A stretch of DNA of 64,000 bases from Epiperipatus broadwayi (taxonomy: Eukaryota > Animalia > Onychophora): assembly GCA_028023455.1 (NCBI GenBank), contig JAQFVV010000005.1, positions 18,972,001-19,036,000 on the forward strand. The letters are read 5' to 3'. The position numbers were made by a program, and so were the translations under genes. Below, in pieces: positions 1,540 through 62,252 of this stretch (its first letter is position 1; each line of letters opens with the position of its first letter). Below the pieces are notes generated by a model. It saw only the letters and a list, made by a program, of their open reading frames with translations. It had not been told where the DNA came from and made no database searches.

Positions 1540-3311
1540 TGATATGTATATGTATGCTTAAATGCACATACATAATATAGGTGTAAACTTAATGAGAAAA
1601 AGTTATAAGTTTAAATAAATTAAAGAATTTTGAAAAACTAATTCTTTTTAAAATAGTAAGTAAAAGATTTATAACTTTAAGATTAGAAAAAGATTATTTT
1701 CTAAAATGAATACCAATCTAATTAATGAGAGTAGAATACTTCGTTAATGAAATATAAAAAAAACAAAAAAAAAGGAAAATAAATAGGGCACACTGATGCT
1801 CTATCATGTATGCCTGATCAGACTGAAAGATATAAAAAAGAAATTAATTATATCGATGCCTTGAAGAGTCAAACCCTCAACAGCACAATAGTGACTGCAT
1901 GGTCATCCGAAGACAATGGCTAACAATGGATGGTAAAGCAGATCAGCAAAGGATGGCCGAATCAACGACCTAGTTTTCTTCATAAAGAATTATGGAATGC
2001 CCATGAGAAGTTGTCTGCATGCAAGAGATGCATTCTGAGGTGTGATCGCGTTCTAATCCCACTAAAGAGTAGGAATCAAATTCTAAAGCTGTTGCACGAG
2101 GGCCATCCAGGCATCATTAGGGCAAAAGCATTAGCTCATAGTATGTCTGGTGGCCCAGTATTAATAATGACATTACAAAAATGCAAACACTGTCAAACAT
2201 GCGCTAAAGTGCCTCCAGTTAAGTCTGAACCATGACCTAAATCTGAAACGTCATGGCAACAGATACACATCAACAACTGCGGCCCATTTGAGGGTCATTT
2301 ATTTTTGGTAGTGGTTGATGCATTTTCAGTGTGGACCGAATATAAAATAATCAATAACACAAGTACAGACATGACAGCAAATTATACGAAATTTTTGCTC
2401 ATCACAAGTTTCCAGAAATGCTTGTTTCAGAGAATGGAACTGGTTTGACTTCAGCAAAGTTTGAAGAAGTGATGCAAGAATGGGGGATTAAACACACACT
2501 CATCCCTCCTACTTCCCTCAATCCAACAGACTAGCTGAGAAAGCTGTACAAACTCTAAAGTCTTCCATTAACAAACTGGGTAAAATTAAAATACATGAAG
2601 CAGTGCTGACTGCACTCCTCCATCAACATGAGACCCCAGTGCTAAATCTGGAAAATCACCGGCTAAAATGTATTTAGGTAGAAAGTTACACACAAAATTA
2701 TCAAACATTGTGCCAATTGGGGATCAAAATAAACACCTATAAATTTAATAAATTTAAACCACAGGAAAAAGTGTAGGTGAAAAAATAATACAAACAAGTT
2801 TTTCACAGGTGGAAGTTTTTCATCATCTATCAAAACAAGTAGTTATAGTTCAAATAAAAAATGGGGAAATACTTCGCAAGCATGTAAACCAGTTATGTAA
2901 AGACGACAACAAGGAGATAATACCCGACTTATTCAACACAACGGACACCGCTGACCAGTTATTAAGAGGGAGCACACCAAGTGAAGTGAAACATAAACAA
3001 CATGCTAAAAGGAAAATAAAAAGACCCACATATCTTAATGACTACATACTGAGTTCAGAGATTAAAAACTGATCTCGGAACTTGGGGAAGTAATGATATG
3101 CATGTGTATTCTTGAATGCACATACATATATACATATAAACTTAATGAGAAAAAGTTATAAGTTTAAATAAATTAAAGAATTTTAAAAGACTGATTCTTT
3201 TAAAATAGTAAATAAAAGATTTATAACTTTAAGATTAGAAAAAGATTATTTTCTAAAATAAATACCAATCGAATTAATGAGAGTAGTATATGTCATTAAT
3301 GAAATAAAACA
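1540..3311 (+). mobile_element. Internally deleted Ty3/Gypsy LTR retrotransposon with both LTRs and an integrase remnant
   Basis: Direct repeats 1540-1765 and 3094-3311 with TG...CA ends; PPT GGGGAAGTAA at 3084-3093. Integrase HHCC region (RVLIPLKSRNQILKLLHEGHPGIIRAKALA) and core remnant (WQQIHINNCGPFEGHLFLVVVDAFS) carry stops and frameshifts. No TSD recognised. Confidence 0.9.
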
Positions 3312-9189: not shown

Positions 9190-9420
9190 GTTATTAAAAC
9201 AGGCAAAAACTTTCCATACAGTAGTGCCACTCAGTGCCAAACAGAGTAATCAATGGATGCCAGAAGGCTTGTGCATAAAATCCCCATCAGTGCCTACTCA
9301 TCCAATATCCCCAGACTAGTTTCTGGCTGTTTGGCACTGAATGGCACTACTGTATGGAGAGTTTTGCCTGTTTTAATAACAGTTATGTGCTAGCATAAGA
9401 AATAGTGATCGTGTGATTAT
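9190..9420. mobile_element. Fold-back PLE pseudo-LTR fragment, family A, with the 3' half of a hammerhead
   Basis: Inverted arms 9190-9244 / 9327-9381. Minus strand CAGCCA-GAAA-CTAGTC-TGGGG at about 9309-9330. Homologous to 22591, 44058 and 60621. Confidence 0.8.
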
Positions 9421-14951: not shown

Positions 14952-15114
14952 TAGTAATGTATTCTGCCCCTTCTTCTGATCGTAATACTTCTTGACACAC
15001 AGCTGAGCTGCTAGCACTGTTAAATACATTATTTGCATTTTTGATTAATTCATAACAGCTTTCTAAGCATCTTTGCCATTCATACGTGTGACGATCCATT
15101 TCTTGGTATAGAGT
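14952..15114 (-). CDS. SYNRG: Synergin gamma-like gene, conserved C-terminal domain exon (phase 0-1)
   Basis: Acceptor cttattgcag|ACT, donor ACTA|gtaagt; 163 nt; TLYQEMDRHTYEWQRCLESCYELIKNANNVFNSASSSAVCQEVLRSEEGAEYIT closely matches the recalled human SYNRG segment YAYEWQRCLGSALNVIKKANDTLNGISSSSVCTEVIQSAQGMEYL. Confidence 0.93.
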
Positions 15115-20804: not shown

Positions 20805-21345
20805 ATGTAATTAGAAGGATTTGAAATGAGGATTTTTCAATCTATTCATCTTCCACTCCATCTCAAGCAACTGATACACATGACAACATACATGTGAAAA
20901 AAATACATGATCCTAAATATACATATTTCTTGCAGAACTAGCGCTCATCAGTGCTCAATTTATATTAAGATAGCAATTCCTCAAACTTTAATGGACAAGC
21001 TTCGATCTTGTCACTCTTTCAACTATTCAACCATCCATGATCATGATCTTCCCACACATTTATACAATCAGTGCTTGGTTAAATAGTTGGAAGAGTAAGA
21101 AGATTGAAGATTTTCCATTAAAGCATAAGAAATTGCTATCTTAATATAAACCAAGCACTGAATGTATATATATGTGTGGGAGATTATGATCTGGTCCAAC
21201 TAATAAGTTCTGGCTCTGCACAAAATACGTATATTAGGGATTATGTATTTTTTTCGCATGTATCTGGTAATGTGTGTCATTTGCTTGGAATGGAGTTGAG
21301 GATGAATAGAGTGAAAAATCCTGAATTCAACTCCATCTAATTAAA
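20805..21345. mobile_element. Decayed fold-back insertion (family D) with hammerhead-like motif
   Basis: Diverged inverted arms (e.g. GATAGCAATT 20969 / AATTGCTATC 21131; GATTTTTCA / TGAAAAATC). Minus strand 20914-20957 reads UGAGCA CUGAUGA GCGCUAGUUCUGCAA GAAA UAUGUA UAUUUA. Confidence 0.6.
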
Positions 21346-22200: not shown

Positions 22201-22705
22201 TATTATATATAGAGATAAATATCATAATACCTTTAAATACATTATTCAGGTGTGCCACTTAGATTATTAAGTTGTTTTTTTGTTTTTTTTTTATAAAGAG
22301 ATTTTTTAAAAAATGAACCCATGGATTTATTTTTTAATCTATTTGTAAAAAAGAATTTGCTAACGATGTAGCAACAGTTGGATAATGCATGCATATATTG
22401 TTGTGATATTTGTTTATATAAATGCCATTTTAGTGTTACATTTATATTTCATATCTATATATAATAAATTATGTAATTTACTTATTTCTATTATTTAAAC
22501 ACAAATGTATAATATGAATCAGTGCACATGCACTCATGATATATATATATATAATTATTAATAGAAAATGTCTCTATATTTATGATAAATAATAAGAGTA
22601 TCAAACTCTTGATACAGTAGTGTCACCAAATGCAAGGTTTTGTAATCAATCAATTCAGGAAGGTTTGTGCATAAAATTCCTATCTAGTGACTACTCATCC
22701 AACAT

Positions 22706-22745
22706 CCTCATACTAGTTTCTAGCTTGTGGCTTTCATCAGTGAGG
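22706..22745 (-). ncRNA. Minimal type I hammerhead ribozyme with intact catalytic core
   Basis: RNA: CCUCA CUGAUGA A-AGC-CACAA-GCU-A GAAA CUAGUA UGAGG. 5-bp stem I (CCUCA/UGAGG), 3-bp stem II, palindromic stem III ACUAGU, predicted cleavage after GUA (22711). Confidence 0.85.
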
Positions 22746-23423
22746 GGACTTGGATTGAAAGCACTGCACCTAGATCTTAGGATCTAATGTAACCCCCCAG
22801 CAACCATTTTTTACATATTTGGTTAACTATAAAGCTAGAAGCTCAAGATGAAAACACCATAAATTTCTAACCCAAGCTCATGCATTTATATAGTCATATA
22901 GATCTAAACTCAGTTCAGCATCTATACATTTTGGTGTCTTTGGTTTTTCAAAAACCAGTCACCATTATCCTATGGGCAGGATAGATATAAAACCATCAAA
23001 ACATCACATGATCACCATTTCATATGTTTACACATGTTGTTAATAAGATTATCAAACTCTCCATATAGTAGTGCTATCAAGTGCAAGCTTTTATAATCAA
23101 TGGATTCTGGAAGGTCTGTGCATAACAGCATGTGTAAGCATATAAAATGATGATCATGTGATGTTTTGATGATTTTATATCTATCCTGCCCATAAGATAA
23201 TGGTTACTGTGGTTTTTGAAAAACACAAGACACCAAAATGTATAGTTGCTGAACCGAGTTCAGATCTATATGACTATACAAGTAAATGAGTTTGGGTTGG
23301 AAACATTATGGTGTTTTCATCTTGGGTTCATAGCTTTATAGTTAACCAAATAGGTAAAAGGTGGTTGCTGGAGGGTTGCAATAGATTCTAAAATTTAGGT
23401 GCAGTGCTCTGGAATTCAAGGCT

Positions 23424-23463
23424 CCTCAATGATGAAAGCCACAAGCTAGAAACTAGTCTGGCA
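23424..23463 (+). ncRNA. Hammerhead motif, family A, core-mutated
   Basis: CCTCA ATGATGA AAGCCACAAGCTA GAAA CTAGTC TGGCA: C3-to-A change in CUGAUGA and weakened stem I. Confidence 0.7.
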
Positions 23464-24348
23464 ATGTTGAATAAGTAGACACTAGATATGGATTTCATGC
23501 ACAAACCTTCCTGAATCCACATTGATTACAAAAGCTGGCATTTGGTGGTAGTACTACATGGAGAGTTTGGTACTCTTATTAACAGCATATGTAAGCATAT
23601 TAAATGGTAATCATGTGATGTTTTAATGGTTTTATGATAAATATATAGAGAAAATATTAAAAAATAAATAATTATAAGAGATTGTAAAAGAAAATGAAAA
23701 AGTAGAATTTTAAAAAATAAATATGAATAAAATAACATTTAATTATATAATAATAAAATATATATGTAAAATAGGAAAAGACACAAAATAACATTACAAT
23801 GAGTTTATTTCTGTTTGGTGCAAAACAGAAGCTTTGGATACCAGGAAAAGTGAGAAAAATGGAACAAGAATTTAAACTATAAAATGTTGAAAAAGTATCA
23901 AAATAAATTGTACAGAAAATGAAGAAACATAAAGGAAAATGCAAGGAATGACAGAATTAAGAATTTGGACTACAAAATGTTGAAATAAAAATCAAGATAA
24001 ACTGTATGGGGAATGAGAGCCAAAGGTAAAAGAAATGAAAAAATATAGATTTTTTTATTCAAATCTTTATATATCAAGGAATATATGGTTACAATACTGG
24101 AACTATTAAAATATCTTTTACTAAAATAGGGTAGAAAAATAATTTGGTAATAAAAGCAAGAAGTAGATGAATTTACTATGGTACATAATAGTTTCATACA
24201 TTATGTAGATTAAACTTAGTTGGTTATTCTCTTTAATTTATATATAAACACACCTAATAAATTGGTATATATTTAAGTAAAAATATAATATATGATTAAG
24301 TTCTGCTATCATTTTTTAAAATAATAATACACACACATATATATATAT

Positions 24349-26558
24349 TGTAACGAGCACAGACGTTCGTTACATTGTTGTTTTTTTTTATTTATTAAAC
24401 ATGAAAGTAAATTAAAAAGTTCGCATTTAAAAATTTTCTTTTAGAATTAAAAATTGAAATTAAATATCAACTTAAACTCTTATATATTAAATCGCACAGA
24501 TAATGAAAAATTATTAAAATAAAAATTTATTAAAGAAAAAGTATTTTAAAACTAAATTTTAAAAAGATTTGGAGATAAAATTATATCTTTAAATTTATCT
24601 TTAAACATATTTTTGATTTGGAAAACAGGTTAATTAATCAGAAATGGAAATGATTGTTAATTAGTTAAATGTAAACCAGCCTTGGCATTTAAATGTAAAA
24701 ACACCGGTCAGATAAGAAAACAATAGAAACTTTCAGCAAATGAAATAAATCCATTTGGAAATCGGACCTCAACGAAAAGGATCATCTCATTGATGACGTA
24801 ATGTTAAGTCAATCCTTCGAATACGTATAAAAGGAAAAATTTTGGAAATTATTAATTAGTGACTAGTTATTGATGATTATTACGATGTAACAGCTAGGTG
24901 TTAGTGCTGAGGGGATTGAAAAAGACGCACAGCTTCAATCCCTTCAGTTCTGCTAAGAAAGGAAGAAAAATGAACCATCGTTTCTACATTGAGGACCAAC
25001 TACACTAAAAAATCTCCGGATGGATAAATAAATCGGCCAACAGGATACCAATCTTCGGACGACGTGGGAATTCACGTTCAAACGGCAAGGAATATATGAA
25101 GATGAACTATTTAAATAACCGTAAGAACTTTAAAATTTATGAACAGTAAATTAAAAACTTTCCAGATTTAAATAATTGCAATATTATTCTATCTGACCAA
25201 CATTATTTATTAATTAGTTATAATTTTATTTAATGTATTTATTTTGTAAAATCATTTCCATTTATTTATTTTTTGTTCTTTAAGTTTTATTATGATTTTT
25301 GTTTTCCGTTAAATTAATTATAAAAATGTTAAACTTAAGTCGGGCGTGAATGGCTGTATAGATTTGTAAAGTTATATTAGGGGAGGGTAATCTTAGGTTA
25401 TTTATGTCGTTGTTAGATTGGGTCAATGGATTGGATATATTGATGTAGTTAGTAGATGTAATCGGAGATTCGCTACGGGCAGAATCGTTTATATATACGC
25501 CGCACTCACCCGTTTGCCTATGGAAGGAATTATAAGACGGAGAACGCAGTTCCTTTCTATGGAGTTTTTTTTTATTGTTCTTCTCGTTAGATAGATGTAA
25601 TATTCCTATCTGATTGAGAGTCAATGTCTTTTCTTAATTCTTTTGGTGCTGCCGTATTTCGTATTACATTGAATACATCGATGTATCAGATGGATTGATG
25701 CCAGTTTGACTGCGAATTTTAGCCTAAGGTTAAATAGGGATAGAATATTTTAATTTCAATGCAAATCTATGTAGTATTCATACTCGATTCTAAATAAAAA
25801 TGCATTAAATTTAAGTTGTTTATAGACGCTTGCATGGATTGTTTATCGGTTAACTATGTTTTGCGTTTTCATATTTGATCAAAATATATAGACATTCGAT
25901 AAATAATGATACCTTACGGTGAGTATCTAAAATGTATTTATTCGGATGTCTTTTAAGTTATTGGTGACAATGCAAGTATCTTATGGTGAATACTATTGGG
26001 TTACATATAAATTTCCCTCCGCAATTGTCAGTAATCAATAATTTTATATTTTGATCGCTTATGTTTACTTTGGAATGTTTTTAACCGTGTAATCTATGTA
26101 ACCGATCTATAGCAACTTATTATAACAAGCTTTTATAATCCCATCTGTGCGAACTTAATTAAAATGTAAAATTAGAATATAATAGTAATTAAATGTAAAT
26201 TAAAGTCAAAAATCAAAGTTAAAAAGAATGTTAAAAATTAAAATGTAAAACTAATACTAAAATAATTTTAAATCTTATATATATGTGCATAAATAAATGT
26301 TTGTATGTTAATTACTGGCAGTGGCTTATTTTATTCTTTTTTTATATATATGCTCTTAGATTATCTTATTAAATCTCTGCTATTCCACTGAGCTAGTGAC
26401 ATGGGCTAACGACCGGAACCAAAATATTTAAAAAAAAAAAAAAAATTTTTTTTTTTTTTTGACTTACGTATCTGCCTACTTATAAATTTTTCTAGGTTCA
26501 AATGCCTAGATGGCGCCCCGTAGAGCAGTTTACATAAGTCATTCTCCGGATCGTTACA
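24349..26558. mobile_element. Solo LTR, 2210 bp (Ty3/Gypsy-like)
   Basis: Terminal inverted TGTAACGA...TCGTTACA, 4-bp TSD ATAT (24345-24348 and 26559-26562), no recognisable protein-coding sequence; colinear diverged copy at 36597. Confidence 0.8.
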
Positions 26559-28056: not shown

Positions 28057-28157
28057 TTCATTTGTTTCTGTTACAGCACTATAGCGATTAGTCCATGGTA
28101 ATGGAGCTCCATTTTGAATGAAGTTACTACTGGATTCATTCCCAGCATTTTTGCTAA
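28057..28157 (-). CDS. SYNRG: Synergin gamma-like gene, coding exon (phase 1-0)
   Basis: Acceptor ctattttgtag|TT; open frame (I)SKNAGNESSSNFIQNGAPLPWTNRYSAVTETNE; donor GAA|gtacct (alternative GCT|gtaaca at 28075). Supplies exactly the phase 1-to-0 link needed. PLPWTNRYSAV lies where vertebrate SYNRG has ALPVIRDKYKDL (recalled). Confidence 0.72.
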
Positions 28158-33479: not shown

Positions 33480-34312
33480 ATATATTGCAAGGAAATAAAG
33501 TCATATATCATCTAACTTAATTTAATAAGCTGGTATTACAAATGCTATATAATGAGCATGCGCTTTTCAAAATATCCCTATCCTCAGATCGGTTTCTGGC
33601 TGCTGACTTATGTCAGTGAGATGCTAGGATATTCAAGCATTAGATTCAAAATACCAGGTAAGCCCTGCACTTATTTAATGGTTAACTATTAAGTAGAAAA
33701 TCTGAAATTTTCACACATCCATATGTCTTTAAAACCAGCTATTTAACTTAAATAGCCATATGGGACTGAATTAAGTTCATATACACTATATATTAATAGC
33801 TTTAGCAACATAAAATCACCAAAGTCTTAAGAGTAAAAACAATAATTGCAAGGAAATCAAGTCATAGCAGTCAGAAACTGGTCTGAGGATAGGGATATTC
33901 TTAAAAGCTTGTTGAGAGCCATTGGCATGCTCATTATATAACATTTGTAATACAAGCTTATTAAATTAAATCACGTGATATATGACTTGATTTCCTTGCA
34001 ATTATTGTTTTTGCTCTTAAGGCTTTGGTAATTTTATGTTGCTAATGCAATTAATATATGGTGTATCTGAATTTAATTCAATCCCACATGGCTATTTAAG
34101 TTAGATAGCTGAATTTGAAGACATATGGATGTCTGAAAATTTCAGATTTTCTACTAATAGTTAACCATTAGATAAAGTGGTGGGCTTGACCTGGTATTAT
34201 AAATCTAATGCTTGAATATCCTAGCACCCCATTGACAAAGGCCAGCAGCCAGAAACCAGTCTGAGGATAGGGATATTCTCAAAAGCTTATTGAGAGCTAT
34301 TGGCATGCTCAT

Positions 34313-34318
<6 letters not shown>
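33480..34318. mobile_element. Tail-to-tail PLE pseudo-LTR palindrome, family B, with three hammerhead remnants
   Basis: Arms about 33545-33865 / 33980-34318. Motifs at 33582-33620 (-), 33867-33888 (+, 3' half) and 34227-34265 (+); inferred consensus CUCA CUGACGA AGGCCAGCAGCCA GAAA CCGGUC UGAG, eroded mainly at CpGs. A related fragment lies at about 59610-59690. Confidence 0.82.
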
Positions 34319-34344
<26 letters not shown>

Positions 34345-36596: not shown

Positions 36597-38630
36597 TGTA
36601 ACGATATATAAATATGCCGTTACATTATTTTAAAATAAAAACTTAAGTTCGCAAATAAAAATAAATTTATTAAAAATCTAAAGGCTAAAAAAAAATTAAA
36701 GAGTTGTTAAACGTATATATATTCGCACAGATGCAAAACTTTAAAAATATTTTTTTTAATAAATAAAAGTATTTGAACGTACTTTGTTATAAAAAAATAC
36801 AAGATTTATAAATTTTGTAAATGGAAATGATTGTTTATGAATTATCGAAAACCAAACTAGCCCTTAGGGCTCTTATATACTGTAATTAAAAAGTCAGAGG
36901 ATAAGATAGATAAGAGAATAAAAAGAATTAGCTTGTCCAATATAGAAACAGCAAATAAAGGCCTGGACCATAACGAAAAAATGGAAGAGTGATGTTTTTG
37001 TTCATGGAATCCATAGGAGGATTATAAAAAGAGAAATATAGAATTTTTCCTGATAGTTCCAACTTGATTTTGTGAGAAGAACGATAAGACACACTTGTCA
37101 TTCTCTCTCACTTATTTTAAAAAATGAAATGACTGTGATACCAGAATGGAACCAGCTAAGGCTACCTCCAGAATATCAGACCGGTCTTCCATGAAAGTCT
37201 TCGTGGGAATTGCCAACAGGAACAGGGAGCTCTTCTACTGTAAGCAATTGAACTGAACAATTTTAAAATCTGAAGTAATTAAGAACTTTAAAGATTTGAT
37301 CAGTTAATCTAAATTTTAAAAAAGGAACTTTTCTCTGACTTATGTTTCAAATTAATTATAAATGTTTAATTTTTACATATTTGTTTGCTAAAAATCATTT
37401 CCATTTTTTTTTTTAATTATTATTTTTATTTGTATTAATATTTATCGTTTAAATTATTAAATGTATTAAATTTCAATTGGGCATAGACGCTTGCATGGAT
37501 TCGTTCACATTTAATTATGTTTTTGTTTTCATATATGATTAAAATATATAGACATTCGGTAAATAATGATATCTTACGGGAATATCTAAAATGTATTTAT
37601 TCGGATGTCTTTTTAGTTATTGTGTTAATGGCATCTTATGATGAATGCCATTGGGTTTCTTTGAATTCCCTCATGCAATTACACAATGACTTTATATTTT
37701 GATCATTTATGTTTATTTTGAAATGTTTTTGAGCGTGTAATCTGTGTAGTCGATCTATGCTCAACATAAAAAAAACAAACTTCTATAAATCCATCTGTGC
37801 GAATTTAAATAAATGTTAAATTTAAGTCGGGCGTGAATGGCCATATAGATTTGTAAAGTTATATTAAGGGAGGTAATCTTAGGTTATGGTTTAGTTGAAT
37901 TAGGTCAATGGATTGGATATATTGGTATAATTAGTAGATGTAGTATGAGGGTCTAGTGGACACAACCCTTTTCCATGGATGGGATTGTAAGTCGGCAAAA
38001 GGACCGGTCCCTTCCTATGGAGTTTTTATTTTATTGTTCTTCTTGCCATACAGATGTAACATTCCTGTATTGGACAATGAGTCAAATCTTCTCTAATCTG
38101 TTCAGATGTCCATTCCTGACAGTATAGTATATTGTGCTGTTGTATTTTCATGCTACATTGAATACATCAATGTATCAGATGGATTGATGCTGGTTTGATT
38201 GCGAACTTTTGGCCTAAGGTTAAATAAGGTATAGAATATTTTCTTTTCAAATGCAAATCTATGTAGTTTATTCATACGCGACAATTTCATCTGTGTAGAT
38301 GATTTAAAAGTTTAAAATAATAATTTAAATTAAAAGTTATATTAAAATCTAAAATAATGTTATTCCTCAAAATTTAAAATGATTCAAAATTTATATGTGT
38401 GTAAATAAATGTTTGTGTGTTAATTACTGGCAGTGGCTTATTTTATTCTTTTTTTTATATATTCTTAGATAAGAATTTATTATAAAATATAAATCTCTCT
38501 ATTCCACTGAGCTAGGACAATGGGCTAACGCGAACACCAATAATTTTTTTAACTTCGTATCTGCCTACTATATAAATTTTTCTAGGTTCAAACTAGGGCG
38601 CCCTTGCAGATATGTTAAGTCCTTCTCACA
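36597..38630. mobile_element. Second, diverged copy of the 24349 solo-LTR family
   Basis: Begins ATAT|TGTAACGA; long shared blocks (AAACTTAAGTCGGGCGTGAATGGC, GGATTGATG, ATTACTGGCAGTGGCTTATTTTATTC, CTATTCCACTGAGCTAG), some in rearranged order; 3' end eroded, no right TSD. Confidence 0.8.
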
Positions 38631-41072: not shown

Positions 41073-41782
41073 CAATATCTAAAAAAATTTAAATGCTCTG
41101 GCCAATAAAAGATGCTCATTTCCAAATGTTAAAACAAGTACCAATATCCCTTCCAAACTATTCTACCTGACTATGTATTTATTATATAAAAAAAATATGG
41201 CAGATTTTTAATCAATCTTATTCTATTATTATTTTTTGTCACAACTCTAATTCTCAACTGTCTGTATAATCCTTTTCCCATTTAACAAAATATCTAAATA
41301 TCTACACTGCTCTATTTTTCAAAGATAAAGATTTTCCATCCTTCAATTTAATCTTTCCTATAAAATATTAGTATCTCAGATTTTTCTTCAATCAATTGAA
41401 TTTTAATATTTCTTCCTATCTCTTTGCACTTCTAAAAATGAAAGTGTTTATATATCTTCTATTAGCTCTTGTGAAAATAAGATTTGAATTATTATATAAT
41501 GACTAAATTTTGAATTGTAAACTATTACAAGATTTATAGAGCTGCCTTTATAAGAATCCCTTCATCAATTGTATCAAGACCTTAAACATACTAGCCACAA
41601 ATCTAAATGGCCATAAATCTTACATATATATATAAAGCAAATTTTATTTGCTTTAATTTTAAAAAATAAAGGATCAAGTACATGCAATTATTAAATATGA
41701 TGCTGTTTGTAGTAAATATGCACACATAATTATATATATATATTTAAAAAATAATTATTTAAAATAAAAAAGTAAAACTTAC

Positions 41783-42649
41783 TATTTACATCATTTGTAT
41801 TATTAAAATCATCATGATCTAATTGGTGGGAATATGTTGCTCGTTGTTCAGCACCAACACTTTCATTCAAACTTTGACTATCTTCCCCAGAACTCAAATC
41901 AAAATTAATGCTTTTTAATTCAAGGCTTTTAACTGACTCTCTGTCATCATTAGTAATTCTTGAGAGAGAAGATTTCACATCTGTTTGTAAAAAATTACTG
42001 TCTGAATTCTGCTTACTGCCCATAGGCCAACCATCCTGAGATTGCTTCACTGCAGAAGTGTTCCCATTAGAGAAATTCATTTGCATAAAGTCTGCAAAAT
42101 TATTATCTTCTGATTTATCATAAAATGACTCTTTTTTCTGAAAATCATCTTCTCCAGAATGAGCAAAAAATGTACTAAACACAGGGATATCATCATATTC
42201 AATCTGAGGTTCTGATTGCAGATCTTTAACAGAATCATTTATTTTATTTGAGATTCCAGATTTATCATTACTATGTTTATCAATAACTGGAGAGCATTTA
42301 AACTCATTCCATTCTTCTTCTTCTTGAAGTTTACTTGAATCTTCCAATTGAAGTTTCTTTAGTGCACTGTATTTATCATACAATGGTAACTCAGTTTTCA
42401 ATTGTTTAATATTATTATTTGTAACATTTGCATGCTGAAAATTGGAAATAATACCCCTTTCCTTGTCTTCAGAAATTGCTTTAAAATTTGCACAATTTTC
42501 AGATTGGGATGACGGTAAATTCTGATGATCACCAGATGACTGAAATGATCTGAAATCAGCAAAATTCTCAGATGAAGTGGCTGCCCCATCTGCAGCTTTA
42601 AAATTATCAAAATCATCATCTGGACCTAAACTAGTGTCGGGTGTAATTA
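41783..42649 (-). CDS. SYNRG: Synergin gamma-like gene, large acidic exon with AP-1 gamma-ear/clathrin-adaptor binding-type motifs (phase 1-1)
   Basis: Core of ORF 41730-42737. Acceptor ttactttcag|TA, donor AAATA|gtaagt; 867 nt. Low-complexity D/E/S-rich sequence with DDDFDNF, NFADF (twice), EEWNEF and DKYSALK motifs, typical of synergin/aftiphilin GAE-binding regions. Confidence 0.9.
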
Positions 42650-43226
42650 CTGAAAGTAAGAGAAAAAATAAATAAATAGATGTTAAAAATAATAAAACTA
42701 GTAATGTTTTTAGTAATATTAAATAATAATTATTCACTTATTTGATAGAACTTACATTAATTTAAACAAATTCAATTTAATCTAACTATTTAATCTATTA
42801 TTACTTTTTAAGTAATATGTTTTCTATCATATATTTAATTCAGGTGTTTCTTGGATTATACTGACTTAATATTAAAAAAAAAAAAAAAATTACATTGATA
42901 AAAACAATAAAAATCCATAAGTAATATATCTTTTTTATAAACCCCTCTGCCAATCTCCTTTCAGTAAATTTTCTATAGTGTACTAGATGTTGATCAAGAT
43001 AAATTATAACTTTATTCTTGAGAAAAATAAGCTGATGATATGAAGGAAGGAAAAACTTATGGTGTTTAAAGACTTGAGCAAAAGTTAGCAAAGTTTGCAG
43101 AGCCTACCTGAATGAATCTGCCATTTTGCCAATAAATTGCTCAAGAATAAATCTTAAAACATTTTTATCACCATCTAATATTCATTTCAATTTGTAATTT
43201 TTAATCAGAAGGTAATCAGTCTTTGA

Positions 43227-44057: not shown

Positions 44058-44360
44058 TTAAAACAGGCAAAACTCACTATATGTATTGCCACACACAGCA
44101 AGCTAGAGTAATCAATGGATGCCAGAAGGCTTATGCATAAAATCCCTATCTAGTGCCTACTCATCCAATATCCCCAAACAAGCCAGAAACTAATTTGGGG
44201 ATATTGGATGAGTAGGAACTAGATAAGGATTTTATGCACAAGCCTTCTGGCATCCATTGATTACTCCAGCTTGCTGTGTGTGGCAATACATATAGTGAGT
44301 TTTGTCTGTTTTAAAACAGTTATACACAAGCATAAGAAGTGGTGGTCATGTGATGTTTAT
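44058..44360. mobile_element. Fold-back PLE pseudo-LTR fragment, family A (about 120-bp near-perfect arms)
   Basis: Arms 44058-44176 / about 44196-44314; the loop holds the hammerhead 3' half ACAAGCCA GAAA CTAATT TGGGG; followed by the family tail GGTCATGTGATGTTT. Confidence 0.88.
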
Positions 44361-46328: not shown

Positions 46329-47924
46329 TCATCATCATCATCATTATCAACCATTATCAATCCACTGCAGGATGAAGGTCTCTCCAAGTTTAATCCATCT
46401 TCTCCGATCTTTAGCTTCTCTTCTCCACATCATCCCTGCACACTTTCTTATTTCATCCATCCATCTCACATGTGGTCTCTTTCTGGGTCTTTTACAATCT
46501 CTTGGAATCCAGTTTAAAATTTCAATTGTCCATCTATTATCATCTCTTCTAACAATATGTCCAGCCCAACTCCACTTCAATCTTTTAATTTTTTCAATGA
46601 GGTCAGTAACACCTGTTTGTTCTCTTACCCATACATTGCGTTTACGATCTCTTCTTGTTACTCCCAACATACATCTCTCCATACTTCTTTGAGTGATCTG
46701 AAGTCTCTGAATTGCTCTTCTATTAAGTGTCCAAGTCTCAGATCCATAAGTAAGAACTGGTAAAACACATTTGTTAAAAACCTTCCTTTTCAAACACATA
46801 GGCATATTTCCTTTTAGTATCAAGTTATTTCTACCAAAAGCACTCCAACCAAGTTTAATTCTATGATTAATTTCCTCCATTATGTTTCCATCTGTATTAA
46901 TAATCTGACCAAGGTATTTGTAACTGTTAACTTCTAATTCATCATAATCAATCTTTATTTTCATATTTTGAGCAAATCGATTAAACATTACTTTAGTCTT
47001 TTTAACATTTATCTTTAGTCCTACTTTCCTACTTTCATCTGATAATTCCTGCAACATTTCCTGCAGATCTGAAGCATTATTTGCAAAAACAACTACATCA
47101 TCTGCGAAATCTAAATGACTTAAATAATCACCATTTACTTTCACTCCTTTAGTTTCCCATTTTAATCCACAAAATACTTCATGCAGCACTGCTGTAAAAA
47201 GTTTTGGAGATATGGAGTCACCTTGTCTTACACCTTTCTCAATGTTGACTTTCCCAGTGTCATTATGTAATCTAATTGTTGCTGTTGCATTTTTATAAAT
47301 ATTCTTTAAAATATGACAATATCCTGGATCTATACCTTGATGATCTAATGCTTTAATCACTGAAGAAATGTTTATAGAATCAAATGCCTTTTCATAATCT
47401 ACAAATCCTAAGCATAATAGCAACTCATATTCATTTGTCCTTTCTATAACTTCTCTCAATACCTGGATATGATCTACTGTACTAAAACCATTTTTAAATC
47501 CAGCTTGTTCTCTTGGTTGGTGGAAATCCAATGTTCTCTGTAGACGAGTAGTAATTATCTTGGTAAAAATTTTATATAAAACTGATAAAAGGCTGATAGG
47601 TCTGTAATTTCTAATATCTTCTTTATCACCTTTTTTAAATATTAATATTATTACTGCATTCTTCCAATCATCCAGTACATCTTTATCATTTAGACATTTG
47701 GTATATAACTTTGCTAAAAATTTTTCTATTTCTTCACCTGCTTCTTTTAATATATCAATCATAATTCCATCATTACCTGGAGCCTTTCCTTTCTTCATAC
47801 ATTTAATTGCATGTCTCACTTCTTCATTTAAAATTCTGGGCAATTTGGAAGATGTAATAGATATAGGAGGTACTTGTTCTTTATTACTATATAATTCTTG
47901 ATAAAAATCTTCTACCAATTTCAA
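46329..47924 (-). mobile_element. 5'-truncated, young RTE-clade LINE with an uninterrupted RT reading frame
   Basis: 525-aa ORF with non-LTR RT motifs (YRPISLLS, QAGFK, FVDYEKAFDS, GVRQGDSISPKLF, DFADD, YKYLG) and an RTE-type C-terminus (WAGHIVRRDDNRW); the stop codon runs straight into a (TGA)n tail at 46329-46349. Confidence 0.95.
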
Positions 47925-54789: not shown

Positions 54790-57315
54790 AGTTCCTAGGA
54801 GGCAGCAAAGTCATCAACGAAGGCAGTGGTTGGTAACTGAAATCTGGAAGTACTGAGAATTCCCTGATTGGGCAAGGCTGCCATTCAATTACAACTGTTT
54901 ATTTAGACACTTATAACTATAGGTCACTTTCAAATAAAGGAAATTTGCATAAATTATCTAATATTATAATGGGTCATCATTGCATTTAGTGAAGTTAAAT
55001 GAAAAAATGAAGAAACAATTTTTTTGAAAAATAGACGTGTATTTGATTATAAAAGTATACATATTGGAAGCACAAATGGAGTGGGATTCATTATAAATAA
55101 AAAGTAAAAGAACATTATGGAGACTGTTGGTATACCAGACAGAGTGGAAAGGTTAGTTATTCAAATTAATGAAAGATATTAAATGCAGATAATTCAGGTT
55201 TATGCCCCAGCAACTTCTCACTGTGATGAAGAAGTAGAAGATTTTTATATGGATGTACAAAATCCTTTTGACCAAATCAAGCAATATTTTAAATTATTAT
55301 GAGAGACCATAATGATTGAAGATGGAAGTGCTATGGGTAAATCTGATTATAGTGATAGAAATGAGATATTATAGATTTATATAGTTTTCAGAAAAAGAAA
55401 AACAGTATAGTGTGAATTCTTTCTTTGAGAAAACTAAATGGAAATGAACATGGAACTATACAAAAAAAAAATGTACAGCAGAATTGGATTATATTTTGAT
55501 TAACAGAAAATAAGTATTTCAAGATTGAAATGTTCTTTCTTAATAGATTCAATATTAGAAGTGATTATCAATTAGTGGGATGCAAGATATGTGATAATGC
55601 AAAATTAAAGAGAATAAAACTTTTAAGAAAGGCAGCAAAAACAGTTTTATATTCCAATCTTCAGAAACACTCCAATAAATTTTAGTAAGAACTTGTAAAT
55701 TATTTTAAAATATTAACAGATTTTGAAAATGGTTCAAACCCAATTGCAATCATTGATAAGATAAATGATATTCTATTAAGAACTGCAAAAAGATAACTGA
55801 TACAAGGAAGCAGCAATTTATCAGTACATTTTTAATGAGACAAAAAATGTTTGAAGAATGATAGGAATATGACATTTTTTAAAAATGATTCATTAAGAAT
55901 GTATAGTTTTGTAAAATGATGGGAAAAATAATTAATTATGATATAAAAAATATAATTGTGAATTGGCAAGAAAAGTTATAAAAAAGAATAAAAGCTCAAA
56001 AGAATAAACTAATATCTTGGTATTGGAAAGAAAATTGTTTCTGCAAAAAGAAGAAAAGATAGAACTACTATTAAAAACAAGATGACACCCTGAAATATGT
56101 GGAAGAGCTCGCAAAAAAATATATAGTGATACAGAATAAGAAAACAAAATAAACACTACAACTCTTCTGAATTGTCACACATTTTAAATGATGAGGTGAG
56201 ACATGAACTAAATCTTAAAAGAAGCACATGAAGATATAGAAAAATTATTGACAAATCTAAATCCAAAATATTTAAATGATAAAAATGTACCAGATGATTA
56301 AAGAATTTAGTAATAATACTGATATTTAAGAAAGATGATAAAGAAGATATTAGAAATATATAGATTTATCAGTCTTCTATCAGTTCTGGACAAAATCTTT
56401 ACCAAGATAATTACAACTCATCTATAGCAAACTTTGGATTCAAACCAACCAAAAGAACAAGCTGAATTTAAAAGTGGTTTTACTACAATAGAGGATATAC
56501 AAGTATCAAGAGAAGTTATAGAAAGAAAAACGAATATGAATTGCCATTACATTTTGGATTTGTAGATTATAAAAAGGTATTTGATTCTAGAAATATTTCC
56601 ACAGTGATAAAAGCTTTGGACCATCAAGATATTCACCCAGATTTTTTCACATTTTGATGAATATTTATCAAACTGTAGCAGCGGTGATTAAATTATGTGG
56701 AGATAGGTAATAAGATTAACATTTAGAAGGATATATGACAGGGTGATTCCATATTTCCAAAACTTTTTACAGCAGTTTTACTAGAAGTATTTTCTAGATT
56801 AAAATGGGAAGCCAAGGGAATAAAAATACATTTAGATTTTTACAGATGATAGTTATTTTTGCAAATAATACTGTAGAGCTTTAGGAAATGTTGCAAGAGT
56901 TGACAGATTAAATCTAAAGATAAATATTAAAAAATTAAAGTAATGTCCAACACATTTCTTCAAAAGAAATCAATAAAGAATGATAATCATGAAATAGAAG
57001 TTAACAATTTCAAATATCTTGGTCAGATTATTCATATAGACAGAGAAACATAATGGAATTAATTAAAAAATTAAACTTGGGTGAATGGCTTTGGTAGAAA
57101 TAATTCACTATTAAATTGAAATATACCTATGTATGGAAAAAAAGGTTTTAATAGACATGTTTTTCCAGTTCTTATTTATGGATCTGAGACTTTGACACAT
57201 AAGAGTAGAGCAATTCAGAGAATCCAGATCACTCAATAAAGTACAGAAATACGAATATTGGAAATAACAAAAAGAAATTGAAAAAAAAAAAATTTAGTTG
57301 AGAGAACAAACAGAT
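54790..57315 (+). mobile_element. Decayed, near full-length RTE LINE (APE endonuclease plus RT), same family as the 46329 copy
   Basis: APE remnants (IIQVYAPATSHCDEEVEDFY near 55190-55250); RT region 56200-57300 aligns at nucleotide level to the young copy (e.g. AAGAAGATATTAGAAAT, ACCAAGATAATTAC, GAACAAGCTG); many stops. Confidence 0.88.
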
Positions 57316-60620: not shown

Positions 60621-60915
60621 AGAGTACCAAACTCTCCATACAGTAGTGCTATTAAGTATAAGCCTTTGTAATCAATGGATGCAGGAAGGTTTGTACATAA
60701 AATCCCTAACTAATGCCTACTCATTCAACATCCCAGACTAGTTTCTAGCTTGTGGCTTTCATTAGTGAGTAGGCATTAGATAGGGATTTTATACACAAAC
60801 CTTCCTGCATCCACTGATTACAAAAGCTTGCACTTGGTGGCACTACTGTATAGAGTTTGGGTACTCATCAATAGCATGTCTAAGCATATAAAATGGTGAT
60901 CATGTGACGTTTTAA
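60621..60915. mobile_element. Fold-back PLE pseudo-LTR fragment, family A, with a hammerhead in the loop
   Basis: Arms 60621-60722 / 60765-60866. Minus-strand motif 60732-60769: CUCA CUAAUGA AAGCCACAAGCUA GAAA CUAGUC UGGG (G5-to-A). Confidence 0.88.
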
Positions 60916-62252
60916 TACTTTTAATTTAATAATTATTCACGTCATATTTTCATATAACTAATATATTGAATACACTCTACATTTTCATCAATGTTCAGAG
61001 TGATAAATTTATAAACATCAAAAACTTAAAGAATAAATATTTTCACTTTGAATTCATTCTATTCATGATTCTTTATCAATAGTGTTTGTTATTCATTCAT
61101 AGCCTGAAAGGAAAAGTGATTTATTCCATTAATTACATATATATAAAGTGTAAATTCATAACGCTTGTTAAAAGCTTCCACAATATTCTACTATCATTTT
61201 CCATTTATAAATAATTATAAATTATAAAGTATAGTAAACATTATTTTAATCTTTTTTTTTTTTTTACTGGAAAAATTATTATGATTATAATTGACATTTC
61301 AGCTAAACTTTGTTAACCATCTTCAGAATTAATTACAAAAAAAAAAAAAATTGAAAATAAATATGATAAATAATAATTACATAAATAAATGTAATAGTAA
61401 ATGTTTTTAGATTTATTTATAGAATTATTATTTATTATTTTAATTTTCAAGTTTTCTTTGTAATTTTCTTTGCAGTTAATACTAAAAATTGACTGAAATA
61501 TCAATTATCATAATAAAAATAATTTTGCAGTAAAAAAAAATAAAGATGCTTTGATCAGTACTTATAATTTATTATCAATATGCATTAACATACCTACAGA
61601 TACAAGTATATAAAAATATTATTAGAATCTTCATTATATATTATATAATTTCCATTAACAATATAATATTTTATTATTAAATAATCTATTTAGACATAAT
61701 TTATTTGTATATGTAAAAAAATAAGATAATGAATTATATAATTATTTCTATTTTTAATCTAACTAATTAAGAATATATTCCTTAAAAATACAAGGAAATA
61801 ATTATAATATTTTATTATAAAACTTATAATATTATAAAAAAGGAAGTAAAAATTTGGAATTTGGGCATGTCATAAAATCAAAAAAACATTTAATATAATA
61901 TTGCCTATGATTGTGATAGCATTACAATTAAACATATGAAAGATTTCATCATTTGTTTTACAATAAATAATTTAATGGTAATATTGAATAATAAAAAAAT
62001 ATGATTTGAAAAATTTTTTTCATCATTAACAAACTGTGACTTTCCTTTAAGTTGTCAAATGATCTAAGTGCAAATGCCATCCAATTGTAAGAAGAAGAAG
62101 CACGTCTAGAGATGTGCAAATTCATTTAGAAGATGTCAACTAAAAATAAAAAAAAAAAAAAAAATAGATCAGCTAAAGCAAATCATGGCTTCAAACTGGA
62201 GGTGAGTTAAGATCTTGACTAAGTGCACCAGCAAGAGTTCAGAAATAATTAC

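Follow-up and report, generated by a model that had tools for sequence, protein, structure and literature searches.

The window, a 64,000-nucleotide stretch of the Epiperipatus broadwayi assembly (contig JAQFVV010000005.1, positions 18,972,001 to 19,036,000), contains exons of a minus-strand host gene, and carries a hammerhead ribozyme motif on the same strand at 22706-22745, within an insertion in an intron. GC content of the contig is 23-30%. Host exons were searched singly, by reference. A whole-genome scan for EH domains gave four hits only, one of which (C5:19069081-19069263, minus strand) lies 33 kb upstream of the window, and the translation of this exon matched PDB 2mx7, 'Synergin gamma', at E 2e-26 and EPS15 at 1e-5, with many aligned positions differing from the PDB Synergin gamma EH domain. 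Since this exon is on the same strand and matches Synergin gamma far better than EPS15, the host gene was identified as a SYNRG orthologue. Acidic-phenylalanine motifs abound in a 335-aa ORF on the minus strand (41730-42737); neither Pfam, applied to exon 15114-14947, nor the ESM Atlas, queried with the large acidic exon 42644-41778, was informative. The motif is in the sense strand, inside the 12.9-kb interval between the recognised exons 28157-28057 and 15114-14952, which may hold further exons, and its placement in a SYNRG intron between exons 28057 and 15114 by an earlier reading of the letters (the initial annotation) was borne out by the canonical AG and GT sites of these exons and by the EH exon. 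The features of the locus are as follows.

14952-15114, minus strand: downstream host exon (polypyrimidine tract and AG at 15116-15115, donor GTAAGT from 14951)
22579-22591: target-site duplication (TSD), left copy, 13 bp, TTTATGATAAATA, direct repeat at the insertion edge
22592-23085, minus strand: arm 1 of the insertion, ~1.1 units of a ~451-nt non-coding repeat, sense with the host gene
22697-22755, minus strand: extended hammerhead, with internal loop 1 and the 6-bp helix I closing stem
22706-22745, minus strand: hammerhead core motif (helix I of 5 bp, CUGAUGA, helix II of 3 bp plus A.A, GAAA, palindromic ACUAGU)
23086-23630, plus strand: arm 2, ~1.2 units, on the opposite strand and head-to-head with arm 1
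23424-23463, plus strand: arm 2 hammerhead, antisense to the host gene and inactivated, with C3>A and with UGGCA as its helix I 3' strand
23631-23643: target-site duplication, right copy, 13/13 identical to the left copy
28057-28157, minus strand: upstream host exon (acceptor AG at 28159-28158, donor GT at 28056-28055)

Direct reading of the minus strand of 22706-22745 gave letters identical to those reported initially, and the 40-nt string has a single occurrence in the 64-kb window, even with up to 3 mismatches allowed. In its 5' part, CCUCA is the helix I 5' strand, followed by CUGAUGA (C3-A9); the helix II segment of 13 nt consists of an A.A opposition, 3 bp of AGC/GCU, and a CACAA loop; in the 3' part, GAAA provides G12 A13 A14 A15.1, the self-complementary ACUAGU ends in U16.1, H17 is the A at 22711, and UGAGG is the helix I 3' strand. 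The scissile bond is predicted between 22711 and 22710. All nucleotides of the type I core are present (C3 U4 G5 A6 N7 G8 A9, G12 A13 A14, A15.1-U16.1, and H17 not G), and three helices surround the core with the open end in helix I, which is the type I topology. Beyond a small internal loop, helix I carries a 6-bp closing stem, formed by AUCCAA (22755-22750) with UUGGAU (22702-22697) and conserved in the repeat-family consensus, and because this stem is present the layout is that of a canonical metazoan type I hammerhead, not a bare minimal one. Since a 2-nt hairpin loop cannot form, helix III of the monomer has one pair at most, A15.1-U16.1 closing a CUAG tetraloop, and 6 bp in the dimer. 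The G10.1-C11.1 pair, highly conserved in other hammerheads, is replaced by A.A at the base of helix II, in this motif as in its repeat family. The A directly after A9 faces another A before G12, and, since the same positions form U-A in the sister subfamily, it probably reads better as position 10.1 than as a bulge of the kind seen in the minimal hammerheads of Penelope-like elements, which have an additional nucleotide between A9 and 10.1 (PMC4209133).

A relaxed hammerhead descriptor script, with an expectation of 0.077 matches per random 64-kb sequence, produced two matches in the real window, 22706-22745 and 61288-61331, both on the minus strand. The simple pattern CUGAUGA...GAAA occurs 5 times in the window versus 1.4 expected; its matches at 20926-20951 (minus strand), 35285, 42522 and 43032 failed the full descriptor and were taken as chance. 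The 40-nt minus-strand hammerhead of the initial annotation, with the helices described there, was thus confirmed by direct reading and by the descriptor. Its proposed Infernal check with the Rfam hammerhead models was run and gave no match: hammerhead families were absent among matches for the whole window at the gathering score, and a search at E<=10 of slices of 701 nt and 96 nt returned noise hits only, without a match to the hammerhead model. The accompanying statement that this is the only intact copy in the window holds within the repeat family, in which the other copies (23424-23463, plus strand; 60707-60795, minus strand; 9284-9373, minus strand; and 44136-44236) are mutated or 5'-truncated within the hammerhead, but not beyond it, since the different motif at 61288-61331 also passes the descriptor. 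This second hammerhead-like motif is likewise sense with SYNRG. Its core is CUGAAGA, a U bulges out behind A9, helix I is AAUU/AAUU, helix II has 6 bp, and helix III is a minimal AUGU; by its letters the motif appears to resemble published Penelope-type minimal hammerheads. An old AT-rich repeat, with ~100 first-look candidates at 72-82% identity, has the motif as its consensus state, and the window copy carries a C-G to U-A double change in helix II.

The insertion that holds the motif at 22706-22745, in its arm 1, is an inverted block of 1,039 bp (22592-23630, GC 35%) whose arms meet head-to-head near 23085. Since the whole block is bounded by a perfect 13-bp direct repeat, it was taken as one insertion event. 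Inverted self-alignment covered 22590-23581 at 82% identity; the arms are still 82-92% complementary, with a divergence between them of ~13-18%. Self-comparison gave a repeat unit period of 450-451 nt, with one hammerhead per unit, and no ORF above 55 aa, and no Penelope ORF, was found inside 22592-23630. The arms contain only 1.1-1.2 units each, and other family loci have adjacent hits of more than one unit. An inverted 5'-truncated copy with a partial tandem within a TSD, which is the Penelope-type insertion architecture, was found at this locus. The carrier of the motif is a non-coding ~451-nt retrozyme-type unit, which refines the earlier reading of a Penelope-like element (PLE). An autonomous parent was sought in an intact Penelope-like pair upstream of the window; the hammerhead there is of another type (U3-A8), no sequence is shared with the ~451-nt unit, and the search hit nothing but an unrelated 64-nt family fragment. 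That pair (L042:3077-9566, in G000:C5:18958000-18967999) is head-to-head, 99.8% identical between its copies, and carries the hammerhead in the form UUGAUAA ... GAAAC; a separate decayed inverted pair of a further hammerhead family, with ACCGGU as helix III, lies at L042:604-1028 of the same segment.

Several other repeats were observed in the window. At 33480-34320 on the plus strand, tandem and inverted repeats with a spacing of 378 nt and arms 88-92% alike contain decayed plus-strand hammerhead remnants, in one of which GAAACCAGUC precedes UGAGG at 34252 and the 5' box has become UUGACAA; this block is probably another retrozyme family. Short head-to-head pairs at 44058-44314, 60634-60855 and 9193-9373 are 3' fragments of the superfamily of the ~451-nt repeat, one pair being 96% complementary with 15 nt between its arms. 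The inner ends of these pairs lie ~3-20 nt from the hammerhead cleavage site, which could mean that cutting by the ribozyme set the 5' ends, or that template switching has a hot spot there. A non-LTR-like element at 46347-47924 (minus strand) has an uninterrupted 525-aa reverse-transcriptase ORF, and an inverted partner at ~56200-57300, 78-81% complementary and ~9-10 kb away. Collinear direct repeats in series at 25280-26110 and 37460-38210, 80-94% identical and ~11.7-12.5 kb apart, are either a segmental duplication in the gene region or two copies of a large element. Two ORF fragments of 101 and 87 aa at 1930-3072 (plus strand) look like remnants of a retroelement integrase region.

Searching an arm against its own 5.6-Gb assembly gave 10,412 first-look candidates, of which the best other copies were 84-87% identical over ~500 nt, and among the best hits of this search 14 or more further loci had the same layout, with the minus arm to the left of the plus arm. 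The exact 30-nt core, from CUGAUGA to H17, has 6,662 copies in the genome versus 0 for the reversed control. A further 35,397 copies belong to sister subfamilies, whose helix II has GGCC...GCC, which brings the hammerhead lineage to at least 42,000 exact cores. Grouped by the nucleotides at position 10.2/11.2, copies of the family and its sisters are distributed as follows.

G-C: about 34,000 copies (estimated from 100 listed matches)
A-U, the subfamily of the motif at 22706-22745: at least 6,662 copies
G.U: about 1,100-1,400 copies (estimated from the same 100 listed matches)
A opposite C: 1,238 copies

The pattern of these counts is that of a single compensatory change, fixed between master lineages. 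At the base of helix II most superfamily copies have A.A, and roughly a quarter of the sister subfamily has U-A; since most copies share A.A, the opposition at 10.1/11.1 is a family trait and not damage to the copy at 22706-22745. A broader hammerhead pattern found 19,010 further motifs in the genome (control 5), belonging to other families with the same architecture and different helices: helix II is GACC/GGUC or GAGC/GCUC, both with the canonical G10.1-C11.1, or UGC/GCA, and helix III in another family is ACCGGU, palindromic too, versus ACUAGU. Helices II and III thus covary between subfamilies and families, giving good comparative support for a ribozyme that would have been functional in the source elements of the ~451-nt repeat. 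Separately, the family with GACC-CAUA-GGUC as helix II, one of at least three further hammerhead families in the genome, forms near-identical tandem arrays with a period of ~426 bp, and looks young and possibly active.

Arm 1 was compared with the consensus of 37 other copies, and was 9.1% diverged, with two changes within the 40-nt motif, C17>A at 22711 and G>A at 22708. The former is tolerated because H17 may be A, and the latter converted a consensus U.G of helix I to U-A. The 'perfect 5-bp stem I' stressed initially is indeed present, but owes its perfection to this G>A, which is absent from the consensus and from arm 2, and a further T>C at 22746 broke the sixth inner helix I pair of the family consensus. 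Arm 2 was presumably identical to arm 1 when inserted; its hammerhead retains the consensus at both sites, namely C17 and the G that corresponds to the A at 22708 in arm 1. Since arm 2 keeps the consensus states, both changes in arm 1 are most probably post-insertion. Simulated random substitution at 9.1% per site left the motif intact, as scored by the descriptor, in 16% of trials, and by the same descriptor it was intact in 9 of 53 sampled aligned copies. Since simulation and observation agree at these values, intactness of the motif needs no selection, and the copy appears to have survived decay by chance; a meaning of its being intact thus found no support in a copy 9.1% diverged. In amniotes, the few intronic hammerheads that are conserved are monomeric ribozymes, stable and subject to purifying selection, and the motif at 22706-22745 shows no sign of either property.

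Whether the motif would cut the pre-mRNA was considered from predicted folds. For a 71-nt extended motif, the hammerhead fold had -7.7 kcal/mol and the minimum free energy (MFE) fold -15.6 kcal/mol, so that the hammerhead is disfavoured by ~8 kcal/mol, and MFE folding of the same segment did not reproduce the hammerhead junction, which is weak evidence only; nearest-neighbour folding ignores the tertiary contacts of hammerheads and co-transcriptional kinetics, and transient active folds are possible. Folding of a 1,091-nt region gave -617 kcal/mol, with a ~500-bp imperfect hairpin between the arms, in which 36 of the 40 nucleotides of the motif are predicted to pair with arm 2 at p ~1 (mean probability 0.89 per hammerhead nucleotide). 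Since the host gene is transcribed from high to low coordinates, the arm 2 complement is made before the motif. When two copies combine as a double hammerhead, each supplies enzyme strands that work on the substrate strand of its partner. No second intact sense-strand hammerhead of the ~451-nt repeat was found near 22706-22745 among the copies checked in the window. Hammerheads with a short palindromic helix III cleave poorly as monomers and well as dimers (PMC4209133, PMC7229834). Since the monomer helix III is 1 bp, an intact sense partner is lacking nearby, and the motif would be buried in the hairpin, cleavage of the SYNRG pre-mRNA is predicted to be unlikely, and the motif most likely does nothing, or would at most cleave its host pre-mRNA very inefficiently. 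The co-transcriptional cut suggested in the initial annotation, and the effect on SYNRG that it implies, consequently found no support, although the kind of hammerhead named there, retroelement-borne and dimer-dependent, did.

One route to cutting would be in trans. The helix I substrate strand of the motif pairs perfectly with the consensus enzyme strand, U-A replacing U.G, and abundant family RNAs might provide the enzyme half of a domain-swapped double hammerhead that cuts intronic sense copies at 22711/22710; the corollary would be that A.A at 10.1/11.1 is a competent natural variant without G10.1-C11.1. We regard this as highly doubtful; if true, thousands of host introns would be targets of retrozyme-directed cutting.

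The reading that we favour, at a probability of roughly 85%, is that the motif belongs as its hammerhead to a single old, non-coding copy of a retrozyme-type repeat (~451 nt) that is very abundant and of a kind that Penelope-like machinery mobilises, and that the motif was preserved by chance and is most likely inert in the SYNRG intron. In active source elements, following the literature, the hammerhead would act as a dimer with swapped domains, joined by the palindromic helix III, and would cut multimeric repeat transcripts to unit-length RNAs, which would then be circularised by a host ligase and copied back to DNA. At the locus itself, a single insertion event placed two partial-tandem copies head-to-head (22592-23630) into the present SYNRG intron, with a 13-bp TSD, after which both arms diverged.

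An active sense hammerhead that cuts the SYNRG pre-mRNA co-transcriptionally, as first proposed from the letters, and does so alone or as a dimer and thereby affects SYNRG expression, is in our judgement improbable. The sense strand has the complete invariant core and three helices, and the helix I substrate strand fits the enzyme strand of the consensus at least as well as the consensus substrate strand does, so that trans action by the abundant family RNAs is possible in principle; set against this are the 1-bp monomer helix III with a fold disfavoured by ~8 kcal/mol, the little or no monomer activity of dimer-type hammerheads (PMC4209133, PMC7229834), the absence of a nearby second intact sense copy, the predicted sequestration by arm 2, a weak helix II without G10.1-C11.1, and an intact state that neutral decay predicts. 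The predicted -617 kcal/mol over 1,091 nt, and arms that are still 82-92% complementary, would also suit an insertion co-opted as structured intronic RNA, in which the ~500-bp hairpin serves RNA editing, small-RNA production or an influence on splicing, and the hammerhead is irrelevant. We consider this very improbable, since the arm divergence of ~13-18% fits two independent neutral decays of ~9% each and does not indicate selection for pairing, and since the insertion mechanism of the element makes the same architecture routinely at many loci. That AT-rich intronic DNA matches the hammerhead consensus by chance might be argued from the Rfam hammerhead models, which did not match, and from the excess of the simple CUGAUGA...GAAA pattern (5 in the window versus 1.4 expected), but this has a negligible probability, and the family data already refute it: 0.077 matches per window are expected for the full descriptor, the same core occurs in thousands of copies with 0 reversed-control hits, and the helices covary between subfamilies and families.

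Within the favoured reading of an old retrozyme-type copy, the closest known systems are the metazoan non-LTR retrozymes (Cervera and de la Pena 2020, PMC7229834), especially HHR_Amex1/Amex2 of the axolotl, an amphibian. Both they and the ~451-nt repeat have a non-coding, low-GC unit of a few hundred nucleotides with one type I hammerhead, and the values found here (period 450-451 nt, GC 35%, no ORF above 55 aa, one hammerhead per unit) agree with the published description (~150-450 bp), the unit being at the upper end of that range. Shared with them are a helix I of ~6 bp followed by loop 1 and a closing stem, a short helix II, a very high copy number, and a TSD longer than that of LTR elements; shared with the amphibian retrozymes in particular is a one-pair helix III with a palindromic tetraloop, because of which the ribozyme is expected to act as a dimer. 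The U.U mismatch at the helix II base of HHR_Amex2 is a precedent for A.A (PMC7229834). Published retrozymes of this class are arranged head-to-tail, as dimers to multimers, and are expressed as unit-length RNAs, both linear and circular (PMC7229834). Unlike them, the locus at 22592-23630 has two head-to-head arms of ~1.1-1.2 units rather than a long head-to-tail array, and the helix II base is A.A.

Next closest are the minimal hammerheads in the pseudo-LTRs of PLEs (Cervera and de la Pena 2014, PMC4209133), with which the motif shares its type I topology, a short inner helix I, and a palindromic helix III segment implying dimeric action (15.2-16.2 with loop 3 is palindromic here, in ACUAGU). 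Opposite-strand motif pairs 100-700 bp apart are frequent, and dispersed single motifs occur in huge numbers, in both. The motif differs from PLE minimal hammerheads in having a helix II of 3 bp plus A.A versus 6-8 bp, without G10.1-C11.1, in a helix I with a defined internal loop and a 6-bp closing stem, which departs from the PLE helix pattern, and in lying outside a pseudo-LTR, with no attached RT/GIY-YIG ORF (PMC4209133). It is also unrelated, with no sequence similarity, to the U3-A8 hammerhead of the neighbouring intact PLE upstream of the window. The inverted 5'-truncated copy with a partial tandem at 22592-23630 matches insertions of PLEs (PMC8557442). Animal retrozymes have been argued to be non-autonomous derivatives of Penelope-like elements, and the repeat class has been reported absent from mammals (bioRxiv 10.64898/2026.07.22.740005). 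About 43% of Xenopus retrozyme copies overlap introns, and retroelement-derived hammerheads in introns, like that at 22706-22745, are common; the surveys report an overall depletion from genic regions, unlike this intronic copy (10.64898/2026.07.22.740005).

The motif is a correct observation of an ordinary member of an already known kind of element, and an intact intronic hammerhead such as that at 22706-22745 requires no host function. It provides a calibration point: where a genome has tens of thousands of hammerhead repeats, an intact sense intronic ribozyme is a neutral leftover in ~1/6 of copies. The ~451-nt repeat family is a very successful animal retrozyme lineage whose hammerhead has A.A in place of the usual G10.1-C11.1, and its insertions, head-to-head and bounded by TSDs, are further support for the published view that Penelope-like machinery carries animal retrozymes along.
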